64,000 nucleotides of DNA from Macrostomum lignano (lineage: Eukaryota). Where the stretch lies: the NCBI GenBank assembly GCA_002269645.1, contig NIVC01000168.1, positions 1 through 64,000 on the forward strand, read 5' to 3'. Below, piece after piece: positions 2,188 to 50,559 of this stretch (position 1 is the first letter of the stretch; every line of letters begins with the position of its first letter). A program made the translations under genes and the position numbers. Below the pieces are notes generated by a model. It searched no databases. It saw only the letters and a list, made by a program, of their open reading frames with translations, and had not been told where the DNA came from.

Positions 2188-2260
2188 TGTGGCCACTGCT
2201 GGCAGAAAAAGAAGTGAAATCAGCATACTTTTATACTCTAAAATAGAAGTTGAGACTGTT

Positions 2261-3322: not shown

Positions 3323-4095
3323 AGATTATAAAGAAACTGAAACAAATAAAAAAGAAAAAATTGTCTGACACAGGGAAAATTAAAATCCGAAGTTATTATA
3401 TTACAATTTATTTTTTTAAACAGCGCCCTTGAAGTCACTGAAAGATAGTTTAGTAGTGGCTCAGTCACAAACGCACACAAACACAAAAACACACTTATTT
3501 TTCTAGATTATTAGACACGGCAGTCAAAAAGAAATTGTCATCGCATACACTGGAAAGTAAAACTTGAGGGCTGAGTTTATTGTATGTCCAACAAAAGCCA
3601 TTTTAAAGGTAATTAAAAATGCCAAAATATGAAATTCATATGATTATTTTTTTACAAAGTTGCATTAAGTTTTTCAAGTTGAACGAAAATAAACAGGCAC
3701 TAGCCGTTATATCGTACTAATAGTAGTACCATAGCGAAGTCAGCACACTTTGTGTACATTTCTAGGTTAGGCAAGAAAAATGCAATATTTTTTTTATAAC
3801 AGAAACTATATTTTTTCTCGGCTGCATTCATATACACTGATTACGTAATATCTTAACAATAATATCGATTGACCTCATTATTTATCAAAAGCGGAACTAA
3901 ATATGGTTTAGAAAATCTTTAATACAATTATAAATCAAACTGAAATAAGCGCAATAAAATTTCTGGATAAACAGATGCAGACAGCTAAAGAGTGCCAATT
4001 GAGAAGGTTTATATAAACAAAAATATTTTACAAATTTCAACGAACCATTGGTCTATGTAATAGGAAGAGATACATATCCTCGGAATACTCGTAGT

Positions 4096-5800: not shown

Positions 5801-5946
5801 GTCTGCCTACCACACTACCTGTCTTTCTGTCTAATGTCTGTTCCTTCTGTCTGCTTTTACAATTCTTATAGGACGTATCCTCATATCTTAAAAACAGCAG
5901 TCTTATTTATATAAAAATCAATACAGCAAAAAACATAAAAATTCGA

Positions 5947-29391: not shown

Positions 29392-29624
29392 TAGAAGATG
29401 GAGGAATGCCTCCCTTATCCGATCGCATTGCTTTGACTGGGGCTGTGTGATTTTAAAAACAAGTTGCTGTGGTTCTTTGTTTTTTTTTCAAATCTAGCTT
29501 GTAGAAGTTGTAAAGCTTTTTCTTGAAGTTAAGTTCAATTTATATTTATTTAGCCAACAGCTATGAAGTTTTAAAGAAATACTGGAAAATATTGTTTAGT
29601 GACTAATTACTAAATGAGAATCAG

Positions 29625-29895
29625 AAGTGACTGTATGATGAGGATTAGAAGTTTCTCTATGATGAGGATCATAAGCGACTCTTTAGTGAGGATCAAGAGT
29701 GACTTTAGGGAGGAATAATATTGACTTTTTAGTGAGGATCAAAAGTGACTCTTTAGTGAGGATCAGGATTGACTCTATGGTGAGGATGAGGAGTGACTCT
29801 GGTGAGGATCAGGAGTGACTCTACGGTGGGGATCAGGAGGGACTCTAATGAGGAATAGGTTAACTCTTATGAGGATCAGGAGTGACTCTCCAATA
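29625..29895. repeat. Degenerate ~24-bp tandem repeat (GTGACTCT..GTGAGGATCAGGA)
   Basis: About 11 imperfect copies of gaggatca/gtgactct. Confidence 0.8.
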
Positions 29896-30178: not shown

Positions 30179-32182
30179 ATGTCGAATACTGAACAAGAAG
30201 CAGCCAAATGCATCTCGCGGTTTTGCGAACGGACAGCTGATGGCGAAAGTCCCTTCTCTGTTTTTCCTTTGTGCCAAGAACATCTTGACGAAGATTTGCA
30301 AAGATGTGAAAATCGAAAGGCTGATATTCTTGAAAAGGTCGATAAGCTCTCTTGCAAGTTGGGGAGACAGTCGCTTCAGTTAGAGAAGCAGGCTTTGGCT
30401 ATAGAAATCCAGGAGATTGCCGATATGTTCGATTCCATTCAAGAAAATCTACAGCAGTGGAAAGAAAAACTTATTTCGAGTGTGCAGAACGTGCACGATG
30501 GTGTGTCTGACAGGCTTGAAATTGCATCTGAATCAGACGTATGCGCCAAAGACATAGCTACAGTGTCTAACTCTGGGAATATGCGCGACCTGATACAGCT
30601 TACAGTGTCCATGGAATCCTGGCTAGATGCTGCCACTAGAAGAACTGCTGAATTTGATCAAAAAAGAGCTCAGTTGCGACAGCGACAGAACAATAACTTT
30701 GGTATTCGTTCTGTCGGAGATGTCGCTGCTGGTGTCCAGCACTTGCAAAATTTGTTTGACAGGCATCTGAACGACGTGATGAAGACTTGCTGGCTTGATG
30801 ATGGGGAAACTAAACCAACAGGAATGTTAGAGCATGATTCTGAAATAGGCGATTTAACGAGCAAACCAACACATGTTGCAGCGTGCACTAACACTGCTGG
30901 ATTTTTCGGCGATGCCTCAGGTCGGGTAGTTCGAGCTGACTCAGTTGGGCATGAAATCTCCCAAACGTTGCCACAGCCTTGTATTTTTGTGGCCTTTGAA
31001 AATCAGAGCGCCGACCATCTATTGGTACTGTCACTTGATGGTTCGGTGAGACTTAAATGTCAAGGTGAGTCAGTCAGCGGTCAAACCGCTATCAAAGGAT
31101 TCGAGTGCGACAGTAGACGCCAGCTGTTGTATGTTGGCCGTGCAAATCTTGTTTCTGTCGCTGACTTAAGTGGCACTCTGCTTCATACTATAGACGGTGA
31201 ACGTATCAAGCGTCCTTTTGGTACCGTTCACGGCATGACAGCCAACTCTGATAAGTTGTTTATGCTTTGTTCGACAGACAACGTATTACTGTGGACAGAC
31301 AACGTATTACTGTGTATTAATAAAGATTCACTTCTAGTCGACTCAGAAATCAGATCTAGAGTATTTAACTGTTTAACATCTGCCTCTGTTGGAGTCGGAC
31401 TACATGGCGGTAAAATTATACTATCGGATGCAAAATTGGTGACTCAAGGAAAAACTAGGAAGTACAAAACTTCGGTCTACAAGATTTGCAGTGTCAGTGG
31501 CGAACTAATTCGTTGCGTTAATTTTGTGAGTTCTTTGCCTGATGAAAATAGACACATGTGCCAAGTTTCGGTCTCTAACACTGGCTTCTTATTCTTGTGC
31601 AACTTGGCAACATTAAGAGTTTTATCTGGTTACAATTTTGAGAGTTTAGCTTCTACTTCTCACTCGGAAGCACCAAGCGATCTGGCTCTGCTGCAGTCGC
31701 AGATTATTGTGACAAGTATCGTTACAAATTTATTCTCGAGTCGGTCAAAATTGCACTGTTATAAGTTTCATGGTGAGTTGAAAATTATGCATGTATGTAA
31801 AATCCTCCACGCTGAAAATTTCAAGAACAGAAACCAGAAATTTAGCTGTTATTCATGGCTTTATTAGCTTAATTAGCTCGTAGCACGCTGTGTTTTAATA
31901 ATTAGCGTTTTTACACTTCTGATAAGAAATTTGATAAGAAATTCTTATCAGAAATCTGATAAGAAATTCTTATCAGAAATCTGATAAGAAATTCTTATCA
32001 GAAATCTGATAAGAATGTAACACACGCTTATGCAATTAAAGTAGTCTGTTCATCAAGTCAAGAGCTTCTGTTAACATTTGATTTAATGGAACATTGAATG
32101 ATTTCGAATCTTTGTCTATAAAGTTTCGAAGTTGTAAAGATGGGGATATTGTTGTTTTTATTTATTTCTAATTACAGTTTGA
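30179..32182 (+). CDS. Array gene 1: Zn-finger (B-box-like)/coiled-coil/beta-propeller protein (TRIM-NHL-like, no RING), about 532 aa spliced
   Basis: ORF 30179-31867 with C-x4-C-x15-C-x2-H, a heptad helical region and a propeller-like C-half. Donor GTGAGT at 31773 and acceptor ctaattacag at 32177 give ...CYKFHV*, matching the paralogue ends. The unspliced alternative is 562 aa. Confidence 0.8.
31917..32015. repeat. Tandem array of a 25-bp palindromic unit (TCTGATAAGAA-A-TTCTTATCAGA-AA)
   Basis: tctgat at 31955, 31980 and 32005. The arms are exact reverse complements. Confidence 0.9.
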
Positions 32183-32950: not shown

Positions 32951-34635
32951 AATTATTAGGGGTATAGGGGTGAAGTTATGCGTGATTATACGAGAGTTGA
33001 CAAAAAAACAAATATACAACTTTAAGCGAGAGGGGCAGAGAGCGCAATCTGTGTCATACTGCCATAAAAGTCAGAAAAAATAATAATTCTAATAATAATA
33101 ATAAATAACAATTATTTTCATCTGGTATATTGTTTATTATCACAGCTATATCAACATCCATCCTCCATTACACAGCCGAGTGTTTTTCGTTTCAAGCCGT
33201 AGCCAGCGGATGAGTTTCACTCTCATGGACAGACGCGGAACAAGCATATTTGAGCACTTACTCGTATTCACGTGTAAGCTAAATACGAGTAACATTTTTA
33301 TTGACTCGGTTGAATTTTTTATCGAAGTGTATACAAACTATACTAATGACCCGTGTCCTTAATGAAGTTTTCGTCTTAATAGTCTTAATTTAAGCTTTGT
33401 GTCCTCTGTTGCCTCCTTATCTTCATTTGTAAAGAATATTAGAATATCCAATTAAGTGAGCCTGTTCAAGTATTTTACTCTTAGCACTGAACTGATCAAA
33501 TAAAAAATAAGCTCAGATATGCAAGCAGATAGCTTAGTAAGTTACTCGTTGCTAGTTAATAAGAAGGTAACGTTCGTTACTTCGTTACCGCTTATCAAAA
33601 AATTACCGATATATTGAAATTATATTAGTTAAAATGATCATAAAGTTTTTTTGGTAGCAGAAAAAGAAACAAAGCTTATTTTCAATTTCAAGTCAACTAA
33701 GGTATCCTATTTTATTTACTGCTCTACAGATTCGATTAAACGTACAGAAAGAAGCTTGTTTTGCCTACTGAAAGCAGCTAGTAGACTTGTTAGCATCGTG
33801 TTTTAATCGATCTCAATCAAACGGAAAAGTAACTCTAAAGTAACAAGTACTTATCGCTACTTAGTTTCTGGCACCGATAATAGAATGACTAAGGTATGCC
33901 ACTCAAAAAATGCGCTCATTTACTCTCTAAGTATAGCGACAATAGTTTTTGCACTTAAACTTGTAAAACTAATAAATTTTACAAGACTTCTGACTTTCTG
34001 TAAGCAGAGTCTCACCAAACCCATTAATTGTCCTAGATTCTAAGTGATTTTTTATGAAATCCTAAAGGTCTTAAAGACTGAAGATAGCGCTCTTGATACC
34101 AGCAAGGCTGATGAAATTGTTACCTTATTTTCCTACTATTGTTTTTGTTGACGTTTATTTTCCTAAGAATTTATGTCATAAAATGTTGCTACTTCGTCCA
34201 TCTCTGATACATGTATACGCGATTGCGATTTTTATGTATCCATTGATATGTTATACTATATGTTATATGTTATATCAACTCAACAGTGACATGAAAAGTT
34301 TTTAGTTCAGACTATTCTGAACATTTTTCTTTAAATTTTATTAGTAAGCATTAGTAGCGGAAAGTTAAGTTGATACTATGCTTAGTTTTGTGTTTATGAT
34401 TTTATTTTATGTCGTAGCTTAACCTTTTCATGTAACGTTTTTTGCGTCTTGCATGCAGCCTTCTACATCTCTGTCAGATTCTTACAATAAATATGCCGCG
34501 CACAGCTGAATGAGTATCTACTAAATTCAATAGAAAAATTAATTGGTTCATTTTTGATGTCATTTTTTTTCATATAAAACTAGTATAATACTCGTAATAA
34601 TAAAAAACTGATTTACCTGACCAACTGCCCGGAAA

Positions 34636-34990
34636 GTGCCCGTCAACATAAGCTCATAAAGTTCATAAGCTCATGAGCCCGAGTAGCCTATGCACAAAAA
34701 TGACACGTCATTCTGCTCACAGTAATACCGGGAAGCTGGGTTTGGCAATAAGAGGGACACAAATTGGACTTAAGAGAACGAGCAAGGGGATGGTTAGGGA
34801 TTATTATGTCAACCTAAGCTCATAAAGTAGAGTCCCTAATTATCCCATTGCTTGTTTTTTCCTATCCCAAGTCGAATTTGCATCGCTCTTTTTGCCAAAC
34901 CTAGCTTCCTAGTGTCATTGTCAGTAGAATATTATTTGTGTACATAACTTACTCGGGCTCCACTTTATGATCCTAAGTTAACAGCCCATT
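34636..34990. mobile_element. Foldback/MITE with about 130-bp imperfect inverted arms
   Basis: gagcccgagta...ggaagctgggtttggcaa (from 34675) mirrors ttgccaaacctagcttcc...tactcgggctc (to 34960). Confidence 0.7.
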
Positions 34991-35428
34991 TAAAGTGCCA
35001 AATGGAAAGATGTGTAAATTTTTATGCAGCGTTCTAGCCTACTTTTCAAGCTTTGAAGTACGTATAATAGGTTTTAGTTCAGCCAATTTGCCAAGAAAAT
35101 GAGCCCACGAGCGTATATTTTGTCCTTATTAGGTATACAATGTATACGCAGTTTGCTAGGGACGATTTAAAGCCGTTCTTTCTACGTTGTTGATATACGA
35201 GCTATTACAACTGCTGTGTAAAGTAATTTCGATGGCATATGATATAGAAAATTCATAAAGCTGCTGAAGCTTCTTAAATCCAAGTAGTGATGTTTCTTTT
35301 GATAGTTATTTTCTCTTTAATATTTGGTAGGATTTGTTTATAGATTTCTCTAGCAACTATTGAACACATATGGGTATTAATTTCAATAAATTGAAGGCTA
35401 ACCGGTTGCTTTAAATTGTTTTCTTTGC

Positions 35429-37027
35429 ATGCCGAAAATGTCAAGTGAACAGCAAATCTGCATTGCTAGATCCTGCGATCGTCCGGCTGAAGACACGAGT
35501 CCATACTCTGGTTTTGCTTTCTGTCGGCAGCATCTTGCCACTGAGATTCAGCGTCTAGAGAAACGACAACAAGAACTGCTAGATAAGCTTGACAAACTTA
35601 GCAACTGTTCAGAAAGACAGGCAATGCGTCTTGGTCAACAAGTTTTGATTGTTGAGATGCAGGAGATTACAGACATGTTTGAAGCTGTTCATAATAGACT
35701 GCACCAGTGGAAGGATCGGTTGGTGTCGCATGTGCAAAAGATCCATGACAATATTGCTACCACGCTTAAGGATGTAGACGAGGCCGATGCTTGTAAGCAG
35801 GAACTAATGCAGGCTCGGGATTCGGGACAGCTGCGCAAAGTGATGGAGCTTGTTGTTTCCATGGAATCATTCGCTGATGACGCTATGGACCGATTGCCAG
35901 AGCATGAAGAACTTCGAGCCGAATTGAAGCAAGATGCTCCCAATCGAATCATTGGCGATGTGTCAGTTGGAGTACAGCAGCTTCAGTTCAAGATCGATCG
36001 ACATTTCACAGATTTGACACAGCACTGTAAGCTTAAAGACATGCCTTCTGATGACTCACCGCAGTGCAATGTGTGCAAGTTCGATAGCACTGTCTCCGAG
36101 CTTCCAAGTGGACCTCGGTACATAACTTTGTGTCAAAACACGAAAAATTATGCTGCCAACCATACAGGAGTGATTATTCCTGCTAAACAAGCTGATAAGA
36201 GAAGTTTAGAACTGCCAGAACAGTGCTTATTTATAGCATTTGATAGGAACAAGGCGGATTATTTGTTGGTGATATCACTAAACAGACGTGATTCTATCGA
36301 TGAGCTAAAGTATCGCTGCGAACAGTTTAACTGGAGCAAGGACATATATGGCATTCATTGCGACAGCAATCGGCAGCAGCTGTTTATAGCTCAGGATCAC
36401 GCTGTGACAGTGACAGACCTGTGTGGCCGAATTGTTAGAGTGGTGACTTCTGATCTGTTCGGTTGGCCTGTTGGAAAGATTTCTGGAATCTCTTGCAACG
36501 GAGACAAAGTTTTTGTGCTAGTGTTGGGCAGCCGCAACCAGAAGGTGCATTCATTTAGCAAGAACTCCGGAAATTTGGAGTCCAGCCTTGATTTAAAAGG
36601 CCATTTTGATGGCGACTTGCGCAAAATCTGCCTGCAAGAGAGCAAGATTTGGCTAGCTGATTGGAAATACCCGAAAGTTTACAAAGTTTGCGGCATTTCT
36701 GGGAAGTTAATTGAAACCATTGATTGCATTGAATCATGTGTTGGTGATATTAAGAAAACGAAATTTTCGCCAATACACATTTGCACTGATGACAGAGGCC
36801 TTTTGTTTGCTAGCCTGATGTCGGCAAATAGCGTAGAAATTTTTGTTGGAGATTCCGTTATTATTAAGTTTCTGGTAGATTTCAACATCGAAGGCGAAGA
36901 AAACGACGACTGCTTTGATCGCCCGGCAGACATGATCATTTTTAACGACGAGACAAAGAACTGCAAGAAGTTAATAGTTTGCGATTATGCTAACGAGAGG
37001 CTCTGTATTTTCTTGCTTTCCACTTAA
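35429..37027 (+). CDS. Array gene 2: B-box-like/coiled-coil/beta-propeller protein, 532 aa, intronless
   Basis: CIARSC...FCRQH, coiled coil, propeller-type blades (IHCDSNRQQLFIA, IWLADW, RPADMII, IVCDYANERLCIF). Confidence 0.88.
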   Translation: MPKMSSEQQICIARSCDRPAEDTSPYSGFAFCRQHLATEIQRLEKRQQELLDKLDKLSNCSERQAMRLGQQVLIVEMQEITDMFEAVHNRLHQWKDRLVSHVQKIHDNIATTLKDVDEADACKQELMQARDSGQLRKVMELVVSMESFADDAMDRLPEHEELRAELKQDAPNRIIGDVSVGVQQLQFKIDRHFTDLTQHCKLKDMPSDDSPQCNVCKFDSTVSELPSGPRYITLCQNTKNYAANHTGVIIPAKQADKRSLELPEQCLFIAFDRNKADYLLVISLNRRDSIDELKYRCEQFNWSKDIYGIHCDSNRQQLFIAQDHAVTVTDLCGRIVRVVTSDLFGWPVGKISGISCNGDKVFVLVLGSRNQKVHSFSKNSGNLESSLDLKGHFDGDLRKICLQESKIWLADWKYPKVYKVCGISGKLIETIDCIESCVGDIKKTKFSPIHICTDDRGLLFASLMSANSVEIFVGDSVIIKFLVDFNIEGEENDDCFDRPADMIIFNDETKNCKKLIVCDYANERLCIFLLST

Positions 37028-37418
37028 ACCGATGGATCAAGCTTAGCTCAAGTAAAGCGGTTATTGACCGAAGAATGTGAATATCGTAACTCGTCGTTTG
37101 TAACAGTTTTCTCAAAACACATTCTTTTACTTGAAGATATATGTATACCTAATATTTCATTTATAAATTTTATAAATATTTATATTAATCTTAATTTTGG
37201 TGCTTGCTTATCTTAAATCTTTTTAATTGCAAGCAGAATGTTCAATCGCCATAGCGTACAGAATTTTTCACGTTTTTTGCTACGCTGCATTTTTACATAT
37301 CTATTGTACTTTCAGTACCGCATGGCAAGTGTTTGTCGTATTTAACAGTTAAAATTTATTTCTTTATTTATTAGTAATCGTTACACATTGTTTTTTGGTT
37401 CCAAGTAGCTCGTACTTA

Positions 37419-38428
37419 TACTCAGCAGCAGTCAAAAGTGCTATCCAACTTCCACTTCTCAATTAAAATTCAACCCACGAGTTTTACGTAACTATGTAGC
37501 CAAGTCAAGGGACAGTAACAGGGTAACAGTCTATCTCAATAGAGTGCTTTATTTTTAGTTTTTTTCGGTAATGTAGGAAAATAGCCAAATCAATTTGCAA
37601 AATTACCGATTCGGAGTTACCAAAGACCAAGTTAAGTGCATCATAGTTAATTTAAGTAGCAGAATCGTTTGGTTCTGTATACTTTTTATGCCCATGTACT
37701 CTGCCAAGCGCAGGCAGTCTTCTCTTTGCTCAAGTGCGTCTTTCAATCGCTGCTTAATCCTCAGCGGATATTCTGGCTCGGGCGGCAGCCATTTACTGTT
37801 GAGTTGGCATTGTCCCACCAGGTTTGGCCTTTTGTATCCATCGTTGTCACTGCGCAACAGATTAGCGCTCTTATTGGCTAATTTACAATTTGAACTGGTG
37901 TTTGCACTTGACTTGGTTAGATAATTAACTGGTTTTTGACCTTGCATTGTTATAGTATCCTCAGGAGAATTTTTATAACAAAAAACATCAGCCCTAAAGG
38001 CCAGCTATATCGCCTAAGATATCTGTATCTCCTTTGAGCTTTGGCATCAACGCCTCCCTTTAGGCCATTATTTAATCCTATTTCTCCCTTCGATCTACCT
38101 TTGGCTTGGCCTACCAAAAACTTCAAAATGAACCTTCTAAATGAAACTTCCAAATATCTCATTAACACTCCCTAAACCGCCACAGCATTTCAGCAATTCC
38201 CCCATAAGCTTTGACATGTCAGGGATCCTCCCTGAGAGCCTCAGCAGATTTGGCTATTTGCCAGATAAACTGAATTTTATGCATTTGGGATGTGGAACTT
38301 AAGTTGGATATAGTACTACGTGACCGAAAATGCCTATAAAGTGTGTACAGTTTTTGTAAGCTATCTAAAGTGCAAAATTTTCGACTTGCGTGAAGGGTAG
38401 CACTAGCACTTTTGACTATTGCTGAATA
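37419..38428. mobile_element. About 1-kb internally decayed DNA transposon, TA TSD
   Basis: TATACTCAGCAGCAGTCAAAAGTGCTA (37417-43) and TAGCACTTTTGACTATTGCTGAATATA (38404-30), 27 bp with about 3 mismatches. No recognisable transposase motif. Confidence 0.7.
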
Positions 38429-39504
38429 TACGCGCCAGAAAATTCAAGATTTTCTGTCGTTGTGGTGCTACTAAACTTAAGACACAATAAGTACGTCGTA
38501 AAATATTAGACTCATTTACTCGCCATATATTTTTGTAGGGTCCCACCTCGAGAACAAACTCTATGTGCCTTGCGTCCTATTGTCATGCAACTATATAGTC
38601 CATTGTGTAATAATTTACGCATGCTCAACATCTGCATCGTAGCTCTCGTCATTGAGGCACAGTGCTTTTCGAAAGCTGTAAATCTTACACTGCGTCCCAT
38701 TGCTAGCCGTGTGTGCAGGCCTAAGTTGTCTCGTCTTGTTTGTGGGGTTGTTTGAAAGGCTCATTTACAGGTATATAACTTTAAGTGAGTTGTGCGTACT
38801 TTTACGCTTAGAATTCACTCGTAATTAAAATAAAGCAAGTGTATCTTGCTTCTCTTGCTTGTATTTTTTGTGTGCTTATTATTGTAAAATTAATTCTTTT
38901 GGCGCTTTTGCAGCATGTTTAATAATAATTTGATAAGTTTAATACCGAGTGAAAAAGTTTGCTTAAAAGTTCGGAATGCTTGTGCTTTTATTTTGATTCA
39001 ACTCCAAACTTCTTTAGCTGTGTATTTCAACATCTAGCTAGGTTATTGCAATATTAAATGAAGTTTTAGTATATGTTTGCCTTTATAATAGATCGTCCAC
39101 TGAAAAGTTGCAAAGATTTACTTTGATACCTTAACTAATTGTAGCTCGTAACTAACTGATTGCTAAATAGAACTTCCAACGTGTGTACTAAACTCGTGTG
39201 CTTCGAACGGTTAAGACCAAAAGGACTAAAAACTGAGAAACTGTTTGTGGCCTATTGCAAGGTCTAAACTCACTTTAAGACTCTAATGTACGAGCTCGTA
39301 GAAGAACGCAGCAGTTCCCTGAAATTGTCTACTAGCTAGCCGCCCTGATCCTTGAGATGAGATACTCGTAGAGCTGGTAGAGTTGCAGTGTGGTGACAAT
39401 ATAAGATGTCGCCTACTGATTACTTGTACTTGCATTGGTTCAGACTAATTACAGAAAAATGATTGAATTTTTGTTTATATGCATGCCGGACGCTAACCGC
39501 AGCC

Positions 39505-41142
39505 ATGTCCAGCGATACCCACCGCATGTGCATTGTCAGATCCTGTTACCAAGCGTCTGATAGCGTGAGTCCTTATTCCGGATTCGCTCTGTGTCAGCAA
39601 CATCTTGGTAGCGATCTTGAACGGCTTGAACAGAGAGAAACTGAAGTTTTAAATAAACTGAATACTGTCGCGGCTAATTCGGAGAAGCAAACTTTTCGAC
39701 TAGAACAGCAAGCGATTCAAATAGAAATGCAAGAAATTGACGACATGTTTGAATCTGTGCAGGCGAGGCTCCAGCTGTGGAAAGAGCAGCTGGTTTCCAG
39801 TGTCCAACAGATCCACGATGCATTTGCTAGTAGGCTGAGAGATGTCGCCGATGCTGAGCATTGTCTGAAAGACATTCATTCGGCACGGTCCAGCGGGAAG
39901 TTGCGCAAAGTGATGAAGCTAATACTATCTGTTGAAAACTTTGCCGATGAAGCCGTCGATAGATCGGCAATTTTTGACGACTTTCGAGCAAGGCTTCGTG
40001 AAATTACTATGGAACGCGATAAGGATAATGACTCTGATGACGATAATGGTGATGAAGATGAAGACGAGTCTTTGAAAACTACTATCTATCGATGCATTGG
40101 TGATGTGTCATCTGAAGTGCAGATGCTACAATCACTGATTGACAAGCATATGCATAGTGTAATGGAGTATTGCCAAATTGACGGCGAATCGCCAGACAAG
40201 CCAGTTTGTCCACCTTTGAAGCAGTCAATTACTCTGCCAGGAGAGCCGCGTTATCTAACTCTGTGTACGAACACAAGTGGATACGTGTGCAACATGAATG
40301 ACTGCGTGGTTTCGCTCAAGTCTGTTGCGAACGCCTCTTATCGAGAATTACCAATGCCCACTATCTTTGTTGCGCTAAGACCAGGTAGCAGTTCTTTACT
40401 GCTGGGCGTTTCTTTTAACATGCGTCGCAAGTTTAAACTAATCTGCGAGAAATTCGACTGGAACAAGGCTATTACCGGCCTTCATTGTGACAATTTGCGT
40501 CAGAGATTATTTTTAGCTCAGGAGCACGCAGTGACAGTGACAGATTTGTGCGGCCAAGTTATTAGAGTAGTTGCTACAAGCCAATTGGGCTTGACTGCAG
40601 GACGAATCTCCGGTATGTCCTGCAATGGTGACAAAGTGTTTGTAATTGTACTGGGAACTAATCAACAAGTGCTTTCGTTTAGTAAGGCCTCTGGAGTGCT
40701 CGAATCCTGCCTCGATGTGAGCGCCTACGGCGAAGGTACATGTGGTCTGCGAAAGCTGTGTCTGCAAGAGGGCAAGATCTGGCTCGCTGACTGGAAGTCA
40801 TCGAAGGTGCTAAAAGTTTGCAGCATCACTGGACAGTTGATTTCAACTACAAAGGCCGATTTTCGGTCTTCTATGACGGAAATAATGCCTCTGCACCTAG
40901 CAAGCGACGATTATGGTCGACTGTACGTCAGCGAGCTGAAGAATCACAGCGTTCAGTCCATTTCAAGCGCAACTGACAATGACGAATTTTTATTTGGAAG
41001 TCCAGGCGAAGCGGGTAATAGCGAAGAAGTCTTCAATAGGCCTGCCGATATAATTGTTTTCAACAGTGAGGCTGTTGGCTACAAGATTCTAGTCGTAGCT
41101 GATACTAACAACATGCGTTTGTGCGCTTTTCGTCTTGTTTAA
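39505..41142 (+). CDS. Array gene 3: B-box-like/coiled-coil/beta-propeller protein, 545 aa, with an acidic linker insertion
   Basis: ATG at 39505 within ORF 39463-41142. Closest to gene 2. Insertion DKDNDSDDDNGDEDEDE. NHL-like end FNRPADIIV...VVADTNNMRLCAF. Confidence 0.88.
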   Translation: MSSDTHRMCIVRSCYQASDSVSPYSGFALCQQHLGSDLERLEQRETEVLNKLNTVAANSEKQTFRLEQQAIQIEMQEIDDMFESVQARLQLWKEQLVSSVQQIHDAFASRLRDVADAEHCLKDIHSARSSGKLRKVMKLILSVENFADEAVDRSAIFDDFRARLREITMERDKDNDSDDDNGDEDEDESLKTTIYRCIGDVSSEVQMLQSLIDKHMHSVMEYCQIDGESPDKPVCPPLKQSITLPGEPRYLTLCTNTSGYVCNMNDCVVSLKSVANASYRELPMPTIFVALRPGSSSLLLGVSFNMRRKFKLICEKFDWNKAITGLHCDNLRQRLFLAQEHAVTVTDLCGQVIRVVATSQLGLTAGRISGMSCNGDKVFVIVLGTNQQVLSFSKASGVLESCLDVSAYGEGTCGLRKLCLQEGKIWLADWKSSKVLKVCSITGQLISTTKADFRSSMTEIMPLHLASDDYGRLYVSELKNHSVQSISSATDNDEFLFGSPGEAGNSEEVFNRPADIIVFNSEAVGYKILVVADTNNMRLCAFRLV

Positions 41143-42061
41143 ATCGTTGGATCAGTTAAGCTTTTTCGTCTGGGTGCTTACGAACACTTGCTAAATTTTA
41201 CATAAAACTTTTCTGATGCGTAGATTTGACGAATTTTACTAACCTAAACTTCTTTGATGATTCCTTTTAAAACTTTTTTACTCCTCAATTTTTTCTTTCC
41301 TGTTGCTAATATTTTTTTAATTTCTACTGTTATTAATTTTTAGTCCTGCTTATTAAACGATTCTGTTCTACTTGAAGATGGCGAGAATTTAAATTTGATG
41401 TTGCATTTCTGACCAGATGTTAAAATGTTCTTGCAAATACCTACGAGTGTTTTTTTAACAATTAGAAATTTCGATTGAATTTTTGTTCCGAATTACTGCT
41501 TAAACTTTTCTAGAAACTGACTGGTGCAGATACGAGTATATACGCTATATTTTGCTATACGAGTGTAAATGCAAGATTGCAAGTATTAGTCCAATATAAT
41601 GTGCATTTTTATAGTTTATGGAACGTCTGGCGCTTGTTATTGATATGCAATAAAATATTTAAAAATAGATAGCTATAGCTTTGTGCTTTCAAAAATATAC
41701 AGTTTTAATCGTTCTAGTTTATCTAAATATACTGGCTACTAATTTTTCCTCAAAGGAAAACTCAACAAAGATAATTTATTTGGACGTAAAACTGTTTAAC
41801 TTAATACATCTACTTTAGAAGCCCTTAGAGATGTACTTTTGTGATTTAATGGTTTTGTGATTCAACACTTTGTTTTCTAAATCATATTATAATAGTGACA
41901 CAAGAGTGTTATGCCACTAAAGCGGGCCACTATAGTGGGGAAAATTCAGGACCATTCTTTTTTCCGAGTTGATTTAAAGAGTATATAGGCTAAGAAACTT
42001 AGACTACTTATTATGTTTTACAAGTTTCACATTGTATTTTTCTACCTCACTCAAGAGAAAA

Positions 42062-43642
42062 ATGAAGCGCAAATACTGCAGTACAGAAAATCTAAATGAA
42101 AATAAATGCTCGTCTAAATTTTGCAACCATCAAGCTATGGGTATGAGTCCACTTACTGGACTGCCATTCTGTGAACAGCATCTCACAAGTGAACTAGAAA
42201 AGGTCAAAAAGCGTCGAACAGATTTATTAGAAAAACTTGAGACCGTCATCGCTGAGTCTGAGAGACGCTCGCTGCGACTGGAGCAGCAGGCCCTGGCCAC
42301 AGAGTTGCAGGAGGTCGCGGACATGTTCGATGCGGCTCAGGAGCGACTCCAGCAGTGGAGAGACCGGCTGATGTCGCGTGTGCAGGAGGTGCACGATGCA
42401 GTCGCCGAGAGGCTGCGAGACGCGAGCCAAGCAGAAGAGTGCGCCAAGGAGGTGAAGGATGAGAACTCTCAGGTCGGGGACTGTGGAAAGCTGTTTGCCT
42501 CAGTAGAGTCGTGGCTCGACGAGGCCTGCAGTCGGTCGGAGAAGTTCAGCCAGCAACAAGTCGAGCTGCGCAATCGGCAGAGCCGTCAGCTGGACGATCA
42601 GGCAGCAGCAGGTACTGTTTTCCGGTGTGTGGGAGACGTAACAGCAGGTGTTGAGCAGCTGCAGTTCGAGATCGACAGACATCTGACAGGTGTGATGCGG
42701 CAGTGCTGGCTCGATGACAGAGAGGCGTCTCCCGTGCTCCGGCCTTCGGGCTCGATCTCGGATCTGCCGAGCGGTCTTCGGTATCTGGCGCTGTGCAGCA
42801 ACACTCGGGGCTTCGCAGCCGACCCGTCGGGTCGCATAGTTCGAATCGACGCTTCGACTGAGGTGTGCGAGCCTCTGCCTGAACTTTGCGTCATTGTGGC
42901 ATTCCATATAAATTCAGTTGAATATCTACAAATGATTTCACTTGATGGAGGCCTTCGACTTCCATGCGAGATTGACTTGGATTGGAATAGTTTTATATAT
43001 GGTGTCCGGTGTGACAATATTCGCCAAAATTTGTATGTAGCGCAAGGCGAAGTGGTTAGTGTCGCCGATTTGTCTGGTCGTATGCTTCGCCAGATCAGGG
43101 ATACTGAAATTGCTGAAGCTAACTGCGTTATCTGCTCAATCGATTGTAACTCAGATAAACTATTTGTTCTGACGACAACTCCGAATCGACTGGTTGGTTT
43201 TAACAAGGATTCTTGGAAGATTGAACTGTCAGTCGATATTGATTCCGTATGCCCTTCAAGCGGGGTTCACAAGTTATCAATTGTTAACTGCAAGGCTATT
43301 TTATCTTATCAGGGTTGCTCTCGAGTTCTTCGAGTCTGTTGCATAACTGGTCAGCTATTAATGTCGTATCCCGTTGATTATCGCCTTATTAAAAAGATTC
43401 GTCGACCTATGCAAGTTGCTTTTAATAGCCGCGGCCTTCTGTTTGTGAATGAGAACCGCCAATTTGTTCGAGTTTTGACTAACGATGGAGTTTGTCTACA
43501 AGTTCTGTGTAGACCAGATGGTCTAGGCAGACAGCAGTTTAATTGTGCGATGGGTGTCCTGGTCTGCACTGAGACCAGTCCGAACGTGCTTCTTGTTGCC
43601 GATTCTGTTGATGAGAAGCTGTATGTGTTTGATATCGTTTAA
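42062..43642 (+). CDS. Array gene 4: B-box-like/coiled-coil/beta-propeller protein, 526 aa
   Basis: ATG at 42062. CSSKFC...FCEQH. RRPMQVAFNSRGLLFV and QQFNCAMGV are NHL-like. Confidence 0.88.
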   Translation: MKRKYCSTENLNENKCSSKFCNHQAMGMSPLTGLPFCEQHLTSELEKVKKRRTDLLEKLETVIAESERRSLRLEQQALATELQEVADMFDAAQERLQQWRDRLMSRVQEVHDAVAERLRDASQAEECAKEVKDENSQVGDCGKLFASVESWLDEACSRSEKFSQQQVELRNRQSRQLDDQAAAGTVFRCVGDVTAGVEQLQFEIDRHLTGVMRQCWLDDREASPVLRPSGSISDLPSGLRYLALCSNTRGFAADPSGRIVRIDASTEVCEPLPELCVIVAFHINSVEYLQMISLDGGLRLPCEIDLDWNSFIYGVRCDNIRQNLYVAQGEVVSVADLSGRMLRQIRDTEIAEANCVICSIDCNSDKLFVLTTTPNRLVGFNKDSWKIELSVDIDSVCPSSGVHKLSIVNCKAILSYQGCSRVLRVCCITGQLLMSYPVDYRLIKKIRRPMQVAFNSRGLLFVNENRQFVRVLTNDGVCLQVLCRPDGLGRQQFNCAMGVLVCTETSPNVLLVADSVDEKLYVFDIV

Positions 43643-44978
43643 AACTTTTGTAATGTTTCAGTTTTTACAATGTAGTGAGGGTATGGAGCTAAAAATCGAC
43701 ATTTTTCTTATCTAGAGCGATATCCTTAGGTTTTGTGTGAAAAATTCAACATCTATGCTAAAACACATGTGACAACAAGGAGATGGCTACTTACTTTCAA
43801 TAAAACTGACGTAGCTGCCAAACCAATTTTTCATAGAAATTGCATAGAAACTGCCCAGTCCAGGAAGTGTCCGAGTATGCGTCATGCTTGCTTGCTCGTA
43901 CTTACATATACTTGACTTGGCCCGTGCCGTGAGCAGTCCTGACTCCACTTACGAAGTTACATACAAGAGTGTAGAAATACGTTAAGAAAATTAAACGCAA
44001 CCTTTGCTCTAATTTTATAATTTTTAACTTTCAGTATCTTCTTTAAGATTCACAAGTTAGCAAACAGCATTACCCATTTCGCTCCACCTGCCTTTTAATG
44101 TATCTTCCTTGGACCAATACTTTCAATACGACTGTAAATTGATTTTATATTTTAATAGCATGCGATAAAAATTTTTGTTTGCTGTAGTGTAAGCAATGAT
44201 ATTTTTTGTACGGTACACACTATTTTGTAAGTAGGTGGGAATCTTCCAAGTTCCAATATTGCAACAAATGTTCGTTTTAAATGTATTCAGACAAATTTTC
44301 GGCTCTAAAATCTGATGCCTGTGTGTAAATTGATTTGCTAAGTTCTTTTTTTAAGTAGCGTGCAAAAGGCAGCATTATCAATCTATTTCTATTGGTGTAC
44401 AACGAGTACAAATAAAAAGTGTATTCGGCATTCATCGCTCAGCTTCTACGATCAAGTAACGCAATAGAATTATTCCTATTCTATTTGATTTGTTTTCTGA
44501 GCTTAGTATACAGGATTTAGTTTAAACTTTGACTTTAAAATATTCCTTTAATTTTGTAGGGCAAATCCCACACGAACCTCAGAAAACAAAGCTACTGCCT
44601 CGTTCTACTGTTTACTTTTGCTACACTACAAACAAACTTGCATGCAACTCGTCGTTCAGGAAAACGGGTGGGCTAGATTAAAAATTGTGCTTGTAATCAT
44701 TCGCCTGAAAGTGATAAACCCTGGCGTATAATAATTATTATAAAAACCGTCTCTTAAGAAAAAACAATCTGATACGACCTATCTACATTAAAAAAGCATT
44801 TTTGTTTAGGAATGTGTCGGATTACGGATAAATATGCATTTTTTTGCTTGTTAGGCCAAATTAGTTGATTTTTTGGTTGCCATTTTTTTGCTTCATTTTT
44901 GGAGTCTAAAAAGGGCATTTAAGAAAACAAATACCACTTACAAACGTTATAAAATCCCTTTCTGACTAAATAGAAAGG

Positions 44979-46559
44979 ATGACCTCAACCGCCGACTCCA
45001 CCGACTGCTGCTCGTCAAAATTCTGTGGTCAGACGGCAGCCGGTGTAGGCAGACTCACCTGTCTGCCTTTCTGCGAGAAACATCTTCAGGTTGACATGAA
45101 AAGACTGGAAAAGCGGAAAACAGATCTGCTTGAGAGACTTAAGACCGTCATCTCTGAGTCTGAAAGACGCTCGCTCCGACTGGAGCAGCAGGCCCTGGCC
45201 ACAGAGTTGCAGGAGGTCGCGGACATGTTCGATGCAGCTCAGGAGCGACTCCAGCAGTGGAGAGACCGGCTGATGTCGCGTGTGCAGGAGGTGCACGATG
45301 CAGTCGCCGAGAGGCTGCGAGACGCGAGCCAAGCAGAAGAGTGCGCCAAGGAGGTGAAGGATGAGAACTCTCAGGTCGAGGACTGTGGAAAGCTGTTTGC
45401 CTCAGTAGAGTCGTGGCTCGACGAGGCCTGCAGTCAGTCGGAGAAGTTCAGCCAGCAACGAGTCGAGCTGCGCAATCGGCAGAGCCGTCAGTTGGACGAT
45501 CAGGCAGCAGCAGGTAATGTTTTCCGGTGTGTGGGAGACGTAGCAGCAGGTGTTGAGCAGCTGCAGTTCGAGATCGACAGACATCTGACAGGTGTGATGC
45601 GGCAGTGCTGGCTCGATGACAGAGAGGCGTCTCCCGTGCTCCGGCCTTCGGGCTCGATCTCGGATCTGCCGAGCGGTCCTCGGTACCTGGCGCTGTGCAA
45701 CAACACTCGGGGCTTCGCAGCCGACCCGTCGGGTCGCATAGTTCGAGCCGACGCTTCGAATGAGGCGTGCGAGCCCCTGCCTGATGTGTGTGTCATAGCT
45801 AGTTTTGAGCTAAATACTGTAGCTTATTTACTACTAATTTCACTTAAGTCCGATGTTCGACTTCGCTGCGAGACCAATTTGAATTGGGCCCGCCGTATTT
45901 ACGGGCTTCAGTGTGACAGCAAGCGGCAGCATGTGTACGTTGCGCAGGCTCAAGCTGTGACCGTGATCGACCTGTCTGGTACCGTGATTCGCAGTGTCAG
46001 CAAAGCCGATTTTGTTAGCACTGTTGGTCCAATCCGATCCATTGATTCCAGCTCAGACAAATTGTTTGTATTGGCTACTGACCCCTATCGATTATTTTGC
46101 TTCTGCAAAGATTCGTGGCAATGCGAGCTGTTGACTGATTTGTCTGAACTGACTTCTAGTTGCATGGTCAACAGTTTTTCAGTTCATGGTAGCAAAATTC
46201 TTTTGTGCGATAGAACTTGCGGTCGGATTCTACGAGTGTGCGGAATTAGCGGTCAGCTACTAAAGTCATATACCCTATCTGGTGAAGTTGTTGACAGTTT
46301 TTACCGCACACTGCATCTAGTTCTGAGCAACTGTGGCCTGTTATTTGTTAGCGATCTAAAACATCACGTTGTAAAAGTCATGAAGTCCAGCGGACCACAT
46401 ATTCAGACAGTCGGTACTCCGGGTCAGTGCGGTCAGTTAAATCATCAGTTTAATGGGCCTGCCGGTATTGTTATTACCAGTGACATGAGCTCGAATCAAC
46501 TTTTCGTGGCTGATTCAAACAACAAAAGAGTTTGCATTTTTGAGCTTACGTTTATGTGA
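44979..46559 (+). CDS. Array gene 5: B-box-like/coiled-coil/beta-propeller protein, 526 aa
   Basis: Intact ORF. HQFNGPAGIVI...LFVADSNNKRVCIF is an NHL-type blade. Confidence 0.88.
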   Translation: MTSTADSTDCCSSKFCGQTAAGVGRLTCLPFCEKHLQVDMKRLEKRKTDLLERLKTVISESERRSLRLEQQALATELQEVADMFDAAQERLQQWRDRLMSRVQEVHDAVAERLRDASQAEECAKEVKDENSQVEDCGKLFASVESWLDEACSQSEKFSQQRVELRNRQSRQLDDQAAAGNVFRCVGDVAAGVEQLQFEIDRHLTGVMRQCWLDDREASPVLRPSGSISDLPSGPRYLALCNNTRGFAADPSGRIVRADASNEACEPLPDVCVIASFELNTVAYLLLISLKSDVRLRCETNLNWARRIYGLQCDSKRQHVYVAQAQAVTVIDLSGTVIRSVSKADFVSTVGPIRSIDSSSDKLFVLATDPYRLFCFCKDSWQCELLTDLSELTSSCMVNSFSVHGSKILLCDRTCGRILRVCGISGQLLKSYTLSGEVVDSFYRTLHLVLSNCGLLFVSDLKHHVVKVMKSSGPHIQTVGTPGQCGQLNHQFNGPAGIVITSDMSSNQLFVADSNNKRVCIFELTFM

Positions 46560-47259
46560 CTTAACTTGAAGACTTTGATCAATTTATGCAGCTGTTTGAT
46601 AGATCAGCAACAAAGGTGCTCTTGACCTTGCGCTTTCTAGTTGAGAGCTGTGTACAATGTACAGGGTGTCAGAACGCCCACCCTATTTATACATTGCAGC
46701 TTCTAACTGCTTACCCTATTACATTAGGGCGAACTCAAGCCCTGCTGCAATTGTGATGTCCTTATTCAAGCGCCTGGAACAGTTTGTTAATTTTAAGATG
46801 TCTACTGAGATTTAGAATATAAGAATCTGTATTCACTATGTACATTATGTTTTGTATTGAACAAATTTATTTTCATTATTCTCGCATTATTAAGCAAATG
46901 CAAATTCTCAAATTAAAAAACTACAAGCAAGGTAGCTTTTGATAGTCTTTTGCATACCGTCTTTGTTGTCTATTTATCGATTTGTACGAGTGTAGTTGTT
47001 TAAAGTACATTGAACTTCGGTGCTGCAAGACAGGCATTCCATCTAGAGTAGCCATAAGAAATATTGTACGTACACTGGAATTGTTAAAGCAGAACATTTT
47101 TTTTAAAACTACTTAACTGTTTCCGTTTAGTTTAAATTTCCTAGGCTTTACATTTTAACTACTGTCTACAAGATTATTTGTATGTTTGCTTCTTTCGTAC
47201 GGTAATCACACATTTAATCATATACATGTATTTCTCACGTTTCAGGTGACAGATTCAGT

Positions 47260-48861
47260 ATGGAGCCAGAATCCGACAGCTCCTGTGCTGAAAACTTTGA
47301 AAGCTGTACATCAAAGTTCTGCAATCAACGGGTAACGTCGCTCTGCCCACTCACTGGCTTGGGATTCTGTGAGCAGCATTTCAGCGTTGAAATAAAGAAG
47401 CTGGAAAGGAGGAAGACGGATGTTCTAAAGAGACTCGATACGGTCATCTCTGAATCTGAAAGAGGCTCGCTACGACTGGAGCAGCAGGCCCTGGCCACAG
47501 AGTTGCAGGAGGTCGCGGACATGTTCGATGCGGCTCAGGAGCGACTCCAGCAGTGGAGAGACCGGCTGATGTCGCGTGTCCAAGAGGTGCATGATGCAGT
47601 CGCCGAGAGGCTGCAAGACGCGAGCCAAGCAGAGGAGTGCGCCAAGGAGTTGGAAGAGAAATGCAACGATGGATTTTGCAATAAAGACGGCATAAAGCTT
47701 ATCGTCTCCCTAGAGTCGTGGCTCGACGAGGCCTGCAGTCGGTCGGAGAAGTTCAGCCAGCAACGAGTCGAGCTGCGCGATCGGCAGAACCGTCAGCTGG
47801 ACGATCAGGCAGCAGCAGGTACTGTTTTCCGGTGTGTGGGAGACGTAGCAGCAGGTGTTGAGCAGCTGCAGTTCGAGATCGACAGACATCTGACAGGTGT
47901 GATGCGGCAGTGCTGGCTCGATGACAGAGAGGCGTCTCCTGTGCTCCGGCCTTCGGGCTCAATCTCGGATCTGCCGACCAGTCCTTCGTACCTGGCCCTG
48001 TGCAGCAACACTCGGGGCTTCGCAGCCGACCCGTCGGGTCGCATAGTTCGAGCCGACGCTTCGACTGAGGCGTGCGAGCCCCTACCGGATGTGTGTGTTG
48101 CTGTGTCGTTTACTGAAAAGGATGTTGAATATATTCTCCTCATGTCGCTAGATGGTAGCATTCGTTTTCGATGCCAAAGCGAGCTGGATTGGAGCAGCCG
48201 GATATTTGGTCTTCAGTGTGACAGCAGTCGTCAGCAGTTGTATGTCGCCCAGGCTAATGCAGTGACAGCGATAGATTTGTCGGGTCAGGTTGTTCACCTC
48301 ATTACGAGGTCGGATTGCGGTGATGTATTCGGCACCATTTGCTCGGTAGACTGCTCTTTGGATAAAATATTTATTCTCAGTGAAAAACCTTACTGGTTAG
48401 TTGCTTTTAGCAAAGCATCGTTTGAGTGTGAGCTAACGGTAGATATGTCTCCATTCAGTACTGTTGATGGCGTCCGCAAAGTGTCTCTTAAAGGTCATAA
48501 AGCGCTTCTTTGCAACCCATTCAGCGGTCAATTAATTCGAATTTGTGGCATCACTGGTCAGCTGATAATGGCTTACCCCGTCAAATCAAATAATCAAGGA
48601 AGACTTTTTCAACCAGGGCAAGTAACTTTCAATGGTCGTGGCCTGCTGTTTTTTTCTGACTCTCACTGCGTCCGAATCATGACCCATGATGGAGCTATCC
48701 AGCAGACTCTTGGGGCTCCAACTGAACCTGGTTGTGGTGAACGGCAGTTTAAAAATCCTTTTGGTGTCATGACTACCGAAAAGACCAATCCTCACAAACT
48801 GTTCTTGGCTGATGTGGCGAACAATAGAATTTGCGTCTTTGAACTTTTTAATCCTGTTTAA
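47260..48861 (+). CDS. Array gene 6: B-box-like/coiled-coil/beta-propeller protein, 533 aa
   Basis: Intact ORF with an acceptor at about 47245 upstream. LFQPGQVTFNGRG and QFKNPFGV...LFLADVANNRICVF are NHL-type. Confidence 0.88.
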   Translation: MEPESDSSCAENFESCTSKFCNQRVTSLCPLTGLGFCEQHFSVEIKKLERRKTDVLKRLDTVISESERGSLRLEQQALATELQEVADMFDAAQERLQQWRDRLMSRVQEVHDAVAERLQDASQAEECAKELEEKCNDGFCNKDGIKLIVSLESWLDEACSRSEKFSQQRVELRDRQNRQLDDQAAAGTVFRCVGDVAAGVEQLQFEIDRHLTGVMRQCWLDDREASPVLRPSGSISDLPTSPSYLALCSNTRGFAADPSGRIVRADASTEACEPLPDVCVAVSFTEKDVEYILLMSLDGSIRFRCQSELDWSSRIFGLQCDSSRQQLYVAQANAVTAIDLSGQVVHLITRSDCGDVFGTICSVDCSLDKIFILSEKPYWLVAFSKASFECELTVDMSPFSTVDGVRKVSLKGHKALLCNPFSGQLIRICGITGQLIMAYPVKSNNQGRLFQPGQVTFNGRGLLFFSDSHCVRIMTHDGAIQQTLGAPTEPGCGERQFKNPFGVMTTEKTNPHKLFLADVANNRICVFELFNPV

Positions 48862-50559
48862 TCCAACTTCTACTTTTTTCCGATGAAGGTAAGAAAAAAA
48901 TAGCGTTCTCACAGCATTTACAGGTGCTGAGCTTGTTTTCTTAGCGTTATTGGTTTTTTGGTAATGTTTGAGGTCCAGCTTTACACTGCGTACTTATTGA
49001 CCGAAATCTGATTACTTGTTACTTATAAACAGTGCCCTAATGCTCCATTTGACATGGTAGTTACTTTTTTATTCACTTTTCTATTCCGAAGTTAGTCTGC
49101 CAAAAATATCTGATTAGCGAAGATACTATACAAACAAAACACTACTAAACAAAAGATACCAAACAAAACTGTCATCTTTGCGATCGTGAAAAAGATATTC
49201 AATGCGCAATGTTTGATACAATGATTGTTAATCGTTTACTACAAACAGTATTTTGTTACAACAAACAGATTTCCTTAAAAATTTGTGCCATTAAAAGCGC
49301 GAGTATTATTATTTCTGAACTTTGTTTTTAGAAAAGCACAGCCAACAACTTTCTTAAAATCTTCCAGAACGTCATTTACATCCTGGCCTATTGTATGTTA
49401 AAATGTCCTTTGAATTTTACTAACAGGTTTCATCGGCACCAATTCAGGCGTTATTATTATTACTGCTTTTTAGTATGAGCCGAAATCATAAGCTGCATGT
49501 ATCCTGCGTTTGCTATGCATTACCTGCTAATTTATGAGCGTATTTGCTTTTTTGTGATCGAAAACTGTATACTTTGCTGTTTTAGACTGTACTAACTGTA
49601 ACCTAAATATTAAGCGTTTCCTAATTATTTTTGTTTGCTAATTAATATTGTGTAAATTCAAATTATGGGCCCGATTTATTAGTTTTGATTGCTACTGTAC
49701 ATGCTTCTATTTACTGTAGAATTTAAATGCATATGATTTCAACGTACGTTATTTCAAATTTGTACTGTGCACTGAAGTGCTATTACAAACATATAGTCAC
49801 TTACATGGCAGTTAAGTTTTTGCTTTGGTTAACTTTTTTACTAAACAGTTTGTGAAAACTCCACTTCGGGGGTAAACCCCCCCCCCAAAGGCAGAGAGCT
49901 TGTATTTAAATATAGCTGGCCAACAATAATTAAAGGTTGTCTGACAATAAAGCGTAAGCCAATCACACGCGCGCGTGCAGGTGATTACACTGCACTGTAC
50001 ATTACACTGAGCGGAGCAACTGAGCAGACCCACGCTACCACACAGTTAGATGAAAAATGTGCAAGTACATCGATCTAGGCTCGTGTCCGCTCTGCAGCTT
50101 ATACCTGGGCTTTTCGCTCGTACATGTAGCATTAATTCAATTCTCACTTAATTCATGCCAAAAAACGACTAAAATAGAAATACAAGAATCATATTAAAGG
50201 ATCTGAATAGGGCCGCATATCAAATAAGCCATGCAGAAAGCAGTCAGATTTTGATTGATACAATCGACCTAGATTGATACTCGTACTTTGCAACTATACA
50301 GCTGCATAAAAATGGACCAGGAAAGTATTTAATGTGAACTTATACGTACCGCGCCCACAACTACTGAGGAAAAAACAGCATTCTTCCTGTTTACTAACAG
50401 TAGTAGTCTGAGCTCTGCTCAGTGCTTGCGGTCCCAATGCCCAAATGAGTGCCCTAACATCACCGATTCCATTAAAAAGTGTAGGAATAGGACTAGTAAT
50501 AGGAATTTAGTCACAGAATTATTGCTTAATTTTGCACCCTCCCCCATGCAGAAGGAAAA

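Follow-up and report, generated by a model that had tools for sequence, protein, structure and literature searches.

How can three neighbouring genes be nearly identical in their middle part, silent positions included, and yet be strongly diverged on both sides of it? The question is raised by the first 64 kb of contig NIVC01000168.1 (the window) of Macrostomum lignano, a flatworm that is free-living, in assembly Mlig_3_7 (GCA_002269645.1). Locus L001, reached through a homologous protein, is 100% identical to window 32056-56559. The window holds an array of six single-exon genes, g1 to g6, arranged head to tail on the + strand, each with one open reading frame (ORF) whose product has a short finger of the Cys/His type, then a long stretch of helices and an NHL beta-propeller of six blades. 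The last three genes, g4, g5 and g6, lie in direct orientation at a spacing of 2.3-2.9 kb and have in common a tract of ~640 nt (Table 1). A first-pass annotation had attributed this tract to recurrent, GC-biased gene conversion that would hold a dimerisation module constant beside a variable propeller, with a local assembly error as the alternative. Our analysis indicates that g4, g5 and g6 are very probably old tandem duplicates whose middle segment has been repeatedly overwritten by non-allelic gene conversion.

Table 1. Array genes and parts of the shared tract, in window positions (pS, proportion of synonymous sites that differ; GC, G+C content; GC3, G+C content at third codon positions).
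Feature	Position	Strand	Description and evidence
g1	30179-31867	+	tract-free paralogue, internal control
g2	35429-37027	+	tract-free paralogue, internal control
g3	39505-41142	+	tract-free paralogue, internal control
g4 (array gene 4)	42062-43642	+	open frame from 42032, first ATG 42062; finger, helical region and NHL propeller; ORF list, paralogue alignment, six-gene profile
Tract in g4	42240-42882	+	sliding identity, six-sequence alignment boundaries; pS 0-0.13; GC3 0.65-0.84; GC 0.616
g5 (array gene 5)	44979-46559	+	526 amino acids; ORF list; Pfam NHL; protein modelled with AlphaFold2
Tract in g5	45142-45784	+	residues ~55-269, most of the helical region and the first propeller blade; sliding identity, alignment, model
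g6 (array gene 6)	47260-48861	+	533 amino acids; ORF list, paralogue alignment
Tract in g6	47438-48089	+	part A 47438-47649, part B 47713-48089, private patch between
Unconverted island (private patch) in g6	47650-47712	+	63 nt, 9-nt insertion, GC 0.40, ~50% diverged from g4 and g5

A sharply bounded tract shared by three tandem genes

In sliding windows of 60 nt, g4, g5 and g6 have an identity of 0.93-1.00 over the tract, which falls to 0.45-0.65 in the flanking coding sequence and to ~0.35 between the genes; each edge of the tract measures ~10 nt. Only g5 and g6 remain alike for ~10 nt beyond the tract end (in g5 to ~45794), and the direct-repeat families D1 and D2 place the tract of g5 at an offset of 2902 nt from that of g4. 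The three intervals given by the first-pass annotation align almost without gaps, although the tract starts ~35 nt further 5' in each gene, at ~42240, 45142 and 47438; the end given for g4 (42882) stands, and those of g5 and g6 are corrected to 45784 and 48089. Over the intervals as first given (608-618 nt; 618 alignment columns), 62 differences separate g4 from g6 and 58 separate g5 from g6, most of them within the private patch of g6. Between g4 and g5 the count is 16 in 608 positions, where the estimate by eye had been about 10 in 570. The private patch itself is present as described, 9-nt insertion included, and recurs in a second copy of the locus. All three tract copies are in frame.

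The homogenisation extends to synonymous sites, as had been proposed: Nei-Gojobori pS is 0.00-0.13 in the tract against 0.6-1.0, that is saturated, in the strongly diverged flanks. Synonymous divergence along the genes is thus far from uniform and approaches zero in the tract only. A GENECONV-like permutation test with 2000 shuffles was carried out on the 1189 polymorphic sites of g1-g6, all six genes being used because few sites are polymorphic among the three converted copies. The longest concordant runs comprised 105 sites in g4/g5, 78 in g5/g6 and 65 in g4/g6; none of the 2000 permutations reached them, the permutation maximum being 30-35. Pairs with g1-g3 gave no significant concordant run in this test, apart from a weak one in g2/g3. 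The latter consists of 13 concordant polymorphic sites (35832-35845 and 39902-39915), was reached in 16 of 2000 permutations and may be a small old conversion or merely a conserved motif.

Segmental similarity and shared fragments longer than expected by chance are both characteristic of conversion, and non-allelic gene conversion of the tract is well supported by these comparisons. No other reading fits synonymous sites that hardly differ in the tract and are saturated from ~10 nt outside it. No inverted repeats were found at the tract boundaries, and no outside donor was found among the family members, the nearest relatives outside the array having at most 54% amino-acid identity in the tract. 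A protein search with the tract only returned a single sequence, the fragment P0004 derived from the older ML2 assembly.

Probable exchange among the copies of two loci

A second contig, NIVC01002962.1 (L002), carries the same array with counterparts of g4, g5 and g6, here called h4, h5 and h6, in the same order and between unique flanks. Tract, boundaries and the gene-6 patch are the same in both loci. In the flanks, orthologues of the window and L002 differ by 0-2% (~9% in the 3' flank of g6/h6), against 42-52% for paralogues. Differences in the tract amount to 2-7% whichever pair is taken, with 2.9-3.3% between g4 and h4 and 1.8-3.0% between g4 and g5. The flanks therefore group by orthology, whereas in the tract, as read from a short-read-polished assembly, orthologues are no closer than paralogues.

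The same incongruence is seen site by site. Informative tract sites of the orthology type unite g4 with h4 at 4 positions and g6 with h6 at 3, whereas others link paralogues, namely h5 with g6 and h6 at 5, h4 with h5 at 3 and h4 with g6 and h6 at 2. The four-gamete test fails for 170 of 325 informative site pairs in the tract (52%), with a minimum number of recombination events (Rmin) of 13, compared with none of 3321 pairs in the 5' flanks and 4% in the saturated 3' flanks. Since orthologues are no closer than paralogues and half of the site pairs fail this test, exchange probably continued after the split of the two loci. At face value, most of the homogenisation came before this split, and patches were still passed between paralogues afterwards.

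A third copy of the locus (L004, NIVC01002156.1 1-13629) matches window 36932-40548 at 98.7% and resumes at 48954, so that window 40548-48954, with the 3' end of g3 and all of g4-g6, is missing from it. L004 is thus a copy-number variant of the tract-bearing genes, with breakpoints outside the tract.

Other differences among these loci deserve mention. Divergence between L002 and the window rises in steps, from 0 mismatches over 6 kb (33019-39018) to 1-3% at 39018-48454 and to more than 10%, with many indels, beyond ~48454. The last step takes in the final 400 nt of g6, where g6/h6 have a pS of 0.15 and a corresponding nonsynonymous proportion (pN) of 0.07; recombination between haplotypes or homeologues is one possibility to account for the steps. 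h4 has a 2-nt frame-breaking deletion inside the tract, at L002 ~10041 (aligned to window 42436-42437), which is either a pseudogenising change or an assembly indel.

Two other arrays of the family, each of three genes, serve as controls. In the first (L005, NIVC01003278.1), pS stays at a uniform 0.5-1.1 and GC3 at ~0.4-0.6 from one end of the gene to the other. Neither high GC nor conservation of silent sites is therefore an intrinsic property of the helical region in this family. The second (L003, NIVC01000245.1, L003 6547-16068) has a weaker dip of pS, to 0.18-0.5, in the same helical region; the minimum of 0.18 belongs to one pair, against 0.7-1.0 in the propeller, and GC3 over the dip is 0.64-0.88. 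The same process, either longer ago or at a lower frequency, seems to have left this pattern, and the coincidence of the dip with high GC3 strengthens the link between exchange and GC.

Base composition of the tract

The enrichment in GC noticed at first sight was borne out. GC is 0.60-0.62 in the tract, whereas the remainder of g4-g6 has 0.38-0.51 on the 5' side and 0.42-0.44 on the 3' side, and the homologous columns of g1-g3 have 0.45-0.46. All three codon positions contribute, GC at first, second and third positions being 0.70/0.45/0.70 in the tract versus ~0.57/0.35/0.44 in the matching columns of g1-g3. GC3 is 0.44-0.45 in the tract-homologous columns of the individual genes g1-g3 and 0.37-0.43 in the 3' parts of g4-g6. 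Within g6, the island (GC 0.40) is flanked by part A at 0.608 and part B at 0.626. Converted sequence is thus richer in GC and GC3 than unconverted homologous sequence, as is expected of biased conversion. The richness in CpG that had also been reported does not exceed what GC content predicts: the observed/expected ratio is ~0.96 in the tract, within the range of 0.6-1.08 found in the rest of the genes, and a CpG enrichment of the tract proper is ruled out. The tract appears CpG-rich because its GC content is high.

Does this composition reveal a bias of the conversion process? At tract sites where A or T alternates with G or C, AT is the minor allele in 26 of 31 cases, and AT-biased mutation acting on a sequence of 62% GC predicts about the same. 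The mutational equilibrium GC implied is ~0.24, and mutation alone therefore cannot hold the tract at 0.62. The rise of GC at three codon positions, the low GC of the g6 patch and the recent variants, mostly from GC to AT, would all fit GC-biased repair. GC-biased conversion, as advanced in the first-pass annotation, is hence consistent with the data and plausible, although the bias itself is unproven.

Reliability of the assembly

Mlig_3_7 is a Canu assembly of PacBio reads, subsequently polished by Pilon with Illumina and RNA-seq reads that Bowtie2 and STAR had mapped. The line sequenced, DV1, carries additional large chromosomes, redundancy in the assembly is high, and the older ML2 assembly goes back to the same PacBio data (PMC5730564). 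The tract is present in at least five or six copies of ~640 nt, so that short reads are not uniquely placeable and single-base calls may be wrong. Public gene models across the tract are indeed chimeric. In P0001 (window 42056-46559) the 5' part comes from g4 and the 3' part from g5, in P0002 (L002 10001-16736) the h4 tract is followed by the 3' part of h6, and the 'intron' of both models jumps between identical tracts.

A repeated region in a polyploid-like, redundant genome with short-read polishing is where one would look for a collapse or a chimera, that is for a tract which the assembler or the polisher copied into three genes. We nevertheless consider such an origin very improbable, and the alternative named in the first-pass annotation is largely excluded. 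PacBio reads should be far longer than 640 nt, so that no collapse is expected. There are 16-62 differences between the copies, and the 63-nt private patch is confined to one of them. They are in frame in all three genes, L002 has the same genes, boundaries and patch, and an ML2-derived protein (UniProt A0A1I8JGL6) likewise joins a gene-5-type finger to the tract. Since Pilon alters bases only where reads align, that is where copies are near-identical already, since the patch differs and since all copies are in frame, the gross structure of the tract is not a product of polishing. We conclude with high confidence that the tract itself is real.

Mechanism and alternative explanations

We infer the following mechanism. 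Overwriting of the tract from neighbouring copies would keep it in concerted evolution, while the finger and blades 2-6 drift to saturation. As strand invasion requires homology, the diverged flanks would confine both the start and the resolution of conversion to this island of similarity, which would perpetuate itself yet be unable to grow, and its boundaries would remain stable and shared. The heterologous 63-nt patch of g6, with its indel, would form a barrier splitting the island in two. The higher GC of the tract at all three codon positions is probably due to repair of heteroduplex mismatches in favour of G/C.

Conversion could also have happened once or a few times before the locus split, with no exchange since, the mosaic of variants being an error of polishing or consensus calling. 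We think this unlikely, though it has to be taken seriously. That the boundaries and the gene-6 patch are the same in both loci does imply that the main event predates the split, Pilon polishing involved multi-mapping reads, ML2 and Mlig_3_7 disagree at several tract variants of h5, and 24 of the 50 classified (biallelic) variable tract sites are singletons. Majority-rule polishing, however, would homogenise variants and not reshuffle them, and doubleton and tripleton patterns run across paralogues and loci: h5 shares variants with g6/h6 at 42382-42417, and three separated sites unite h4 and h5. Moreover, the mechanism makes it unlikely that conversion first began between sequences already ~50% apart, and the more economical history would be one of continuous exchange since the duplications, with the flanks escaping. 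As to selection, the tract may be a common dimerisation module (for instance for coiled-coil heterodimers) that is kept alike, conversion being a mere means, which selection would keep out of propeller and finger while these diversify. This explanation we also regard as improbable, though not negligible. It would agree with sharp boundaries common to three genes and both loci, with pS saturated right outside, and with a 3' boundary lying between blades 1 and 2 of the structural model; mosaic concerted evolution with conserved boundaries has been so interpreted in mammalian gene pairs (PMC2720389). The tract is no more constrained than the flanks, though, with a pN/pS of 0.4-0.7, and of the tract differences between g4 and g5, 13 are nonsynonymous and 6 synonymous, so that about two-thirds of them alter the protein. 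Its constancy therefore comes from copying rather than from constraint, and homology-limited conversion accounts for fixed boundaries without selection; in the propeller, saturation of pS makes the ratio of nonsynonymous to synonymous substitution rates (dN/dS) uninformative. Constraint at the nucleotide level, imposed for instance by an overlapping antisense gene, regulatory element or structured RNA, is the most far-fetched of these explanations. A long antisense ORF of 202 amino acids does lie in the GC-rich tract of g4 (42598-43206), but antisense ORFs are differently placed in g4, g5 and g6 and none is conserved, a scan of 41000-49500 against Rfam gave no match at E <= 0.1, g1-g3 and the L005 array show no such conservation in the same region, and constraint does not yield variants reshuffled among copies.

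Several points weigh against the explanation by repeated conversion. Polishing by Pilon relied on ambiguously mappable short reads and RNA-seq, and the single-base detail of the tract is not secure. The ML2-derived A0A1I8JGL6 agrees with h5 in tract part A, private variants included, but not in part B, and a part of the mosaic of single-nucleotide polymorphisms (SNPs) from which ongoing exchange is deduced may be consensus noise. A single read set from a single inbred line underlies both contigs, and the comparison is confined to two to three locus copies within that line. The argument for a GC bias is one of composition. The sharpness of the boundaries may in addition require selection against conversion of the flanks. 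The early claim that conversion is recurrent accordingly holds in so far as a mosaic exists among the six copies, and is weakened by the Pilon polishing and by the disagreement of two same-read assemblies on some tract SNPs; exchange is probably still ongoing, but this is unproven. Assemblies of Macrostomum cliftonense and M. hystrix exist (PMC10468722).

Protein family and possible function of the shared module

Examination of the six array proteins places them close to the TRIM-NHL family. A profile of the six proteins matched, in PDB, the NHL domains of Drosophila Thin, TRIM71, TRIM2 and TRIM3 with E values from 7.6e-14 to 5e-07, the best being those of Thin (7.6e-14) and TRIM71 (9.3e-14). 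Pfam NHL repeats were matched in g3 and g5 (residues 491-521 in g5). An AlphaFold2 monomer model of g5, with a mean predicted local distance difference test score (pLDDT) of 69, has helices at residues 33-210 and a propeller at 220-526. The helices, a long one at 33-114 and others up to 210, are of low confidence (pLDDT 33-65), while the propeller reaches 80-93 for blades 1-4 and 50-91 for the last blades. The top Foldseek matches of this model are again the NHL domains of Thin, TRIM71, TRIM2 and TRIM3. In the model the tract takes in the four strands of blade 1 and ends at the start of blade 2, which fits the earlier description of the tract as coiled coil and first blade.

Pfam, the profile and the model thus agree on a six-bladed C-terminal NHL propeller, whereas the N-terminal RING and B-box typical of TRIM-NHL proteins are not detectable. 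The finger has only four Cys/His invariant across the six genes (C11, C16, C32, H35; C-x4-C-x15-C-x2-H). At E <= 1, none of the six array genes matched a RING or a B-box in Pfam, and distant relatives tagged 'RING-type' by UniProt are likewise without a Pfam hit; on these Pfam results a RING/B-box architecture of the array genes is rejected. Like TRIM71/LIN-41, TRIM2, TRIM3, Thin/TRIM32 and Brat, the array proteins have a C-terminal six-bladed NHL propeller after a long helical region, comparable to the TRIM coiled coil. They differ from them by the lack of a detectable RING, B-box or filamin domain, by intronless genes organised in arrays and by recognisable full-length relatives that are nearly all from M. 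lignano. The family is best described as TRIM-NHL-like, an NHL propeller being combined with a helical region. Many full-length relatives were found among 1.84 billion representative proteins searched. Nine of the ten relative clusters looked up are from M. lignano, usually with two or three near-identical copies on different contigs, and one consists of proteins on short JGI/IMG contigs. This family with helical region and NHL propeller is expanded in Macrostomum lignano. A literature search for this array family found nothing specific.

By analogy with TRIM proteins, the array proteins may dimerise through their helical region. A rather doubtful idea is that the shared helical module would be kept identical so that the products of g4, g5 and g6 can pair, with selection, and not homology only, pinning the boundaries at the edge of blade 1 and conversion maintaining a 'constant region'. 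If this were true, three propellers would give six dimer combinations, that is a combinatorial set of NHL receptors in a flatworm, with conversion kept off the recognition surfaces.

Comparison with known cases of partial gene conversion

The signature of conversion described here is already known from protocadherins and from mammalian gene pairs. In the Pcdh2 clusters of fugu, paralogues are >99% identical in part of a coding exon, synonymous sites included, beside a diverged part, and GC3 is 56-69% in the homogenised part against 40-45% (PMC1852091); for zebrafish and human, PMC1852091 cites Noonan et al. 2004. The likeness extends from tandem paralogues with a significantly higher GC3 in the homogenised part (here 70% versus 37-44%) to the lineage-specific character of the pattern, which is not found in every cluster of the family. 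In contrast to the fugu protocadherins, the array of the flatworm, which is no vertebrate, concerns a helical region and an NHL propeller instead of cadherin ectodomains, and its tract is internal, with both flanks diverged, is limited to three genes and is interrupted in one copy by an unconverted island.

The mammalian pairs BMP8A/B, DDX19A/B and TUBG1/2 show mosaic concerted evolution with raised GC3 in the concerted part and stable boundaries, maintained across species for 100 million years, and structural or binding regions were proposed to be kept alike while ligand-binding parts diverge (PMC2720389). The array genes resemble them in being partly converted and partly diverging, in the raised GC3 of the concerted part and in their stable boundaries, which are followed here over two to three locus copies within one line.

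New here are the protein family and the phylum, and the internal controls are unusually good. The tract opens no new kind of biology; it is unusually clean, with sharp edges, unconverted paralogues and an unconverted island that all track GC at a scale of ~60 nt, and offers a possible test case for GC-biased conversion in Platyhelminthes, a phylum in which we know of no direct evidence of it. A literature search on gene conversion in Macrostomum, M. lignano included, found nothing specific. From a practical point of view, the tract has already yielded chimeric public gene models and will mislead short-read mapping, expression estimates, targeting by RNA interference (RNAi) or CRISPR, and phylogenies of the family.

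Other features of the window

Among the tract-free paralogues, g1 contains an internal duplicated 'DNVLL' stretch that is not in the L002 gene model and has a longer C-terminal tail, for which no alignment to the last blades of the remaining array genes is possible; g1 may be a decaying gene. Minisatellite arrays with periods of 17-152 nt fill nearly all of window 1-11000, with which the stretches 26541-27030 and 29615-29889 are grouped. Two apparent ORFs of 566 and 593 amino acids at 4095-5914 are artefacts of a 57-nt repeat. Downstream of the array, a gene for an ASAP-like ArfGAP (BAR-PH-ArfGap-Ank-SH3) begins at ~52400. Finally, an open frame of 769 amino acids on the - strand (60653-62962) has no Pfam match; the region around it shows 98% conservation in both other copies of the locus.

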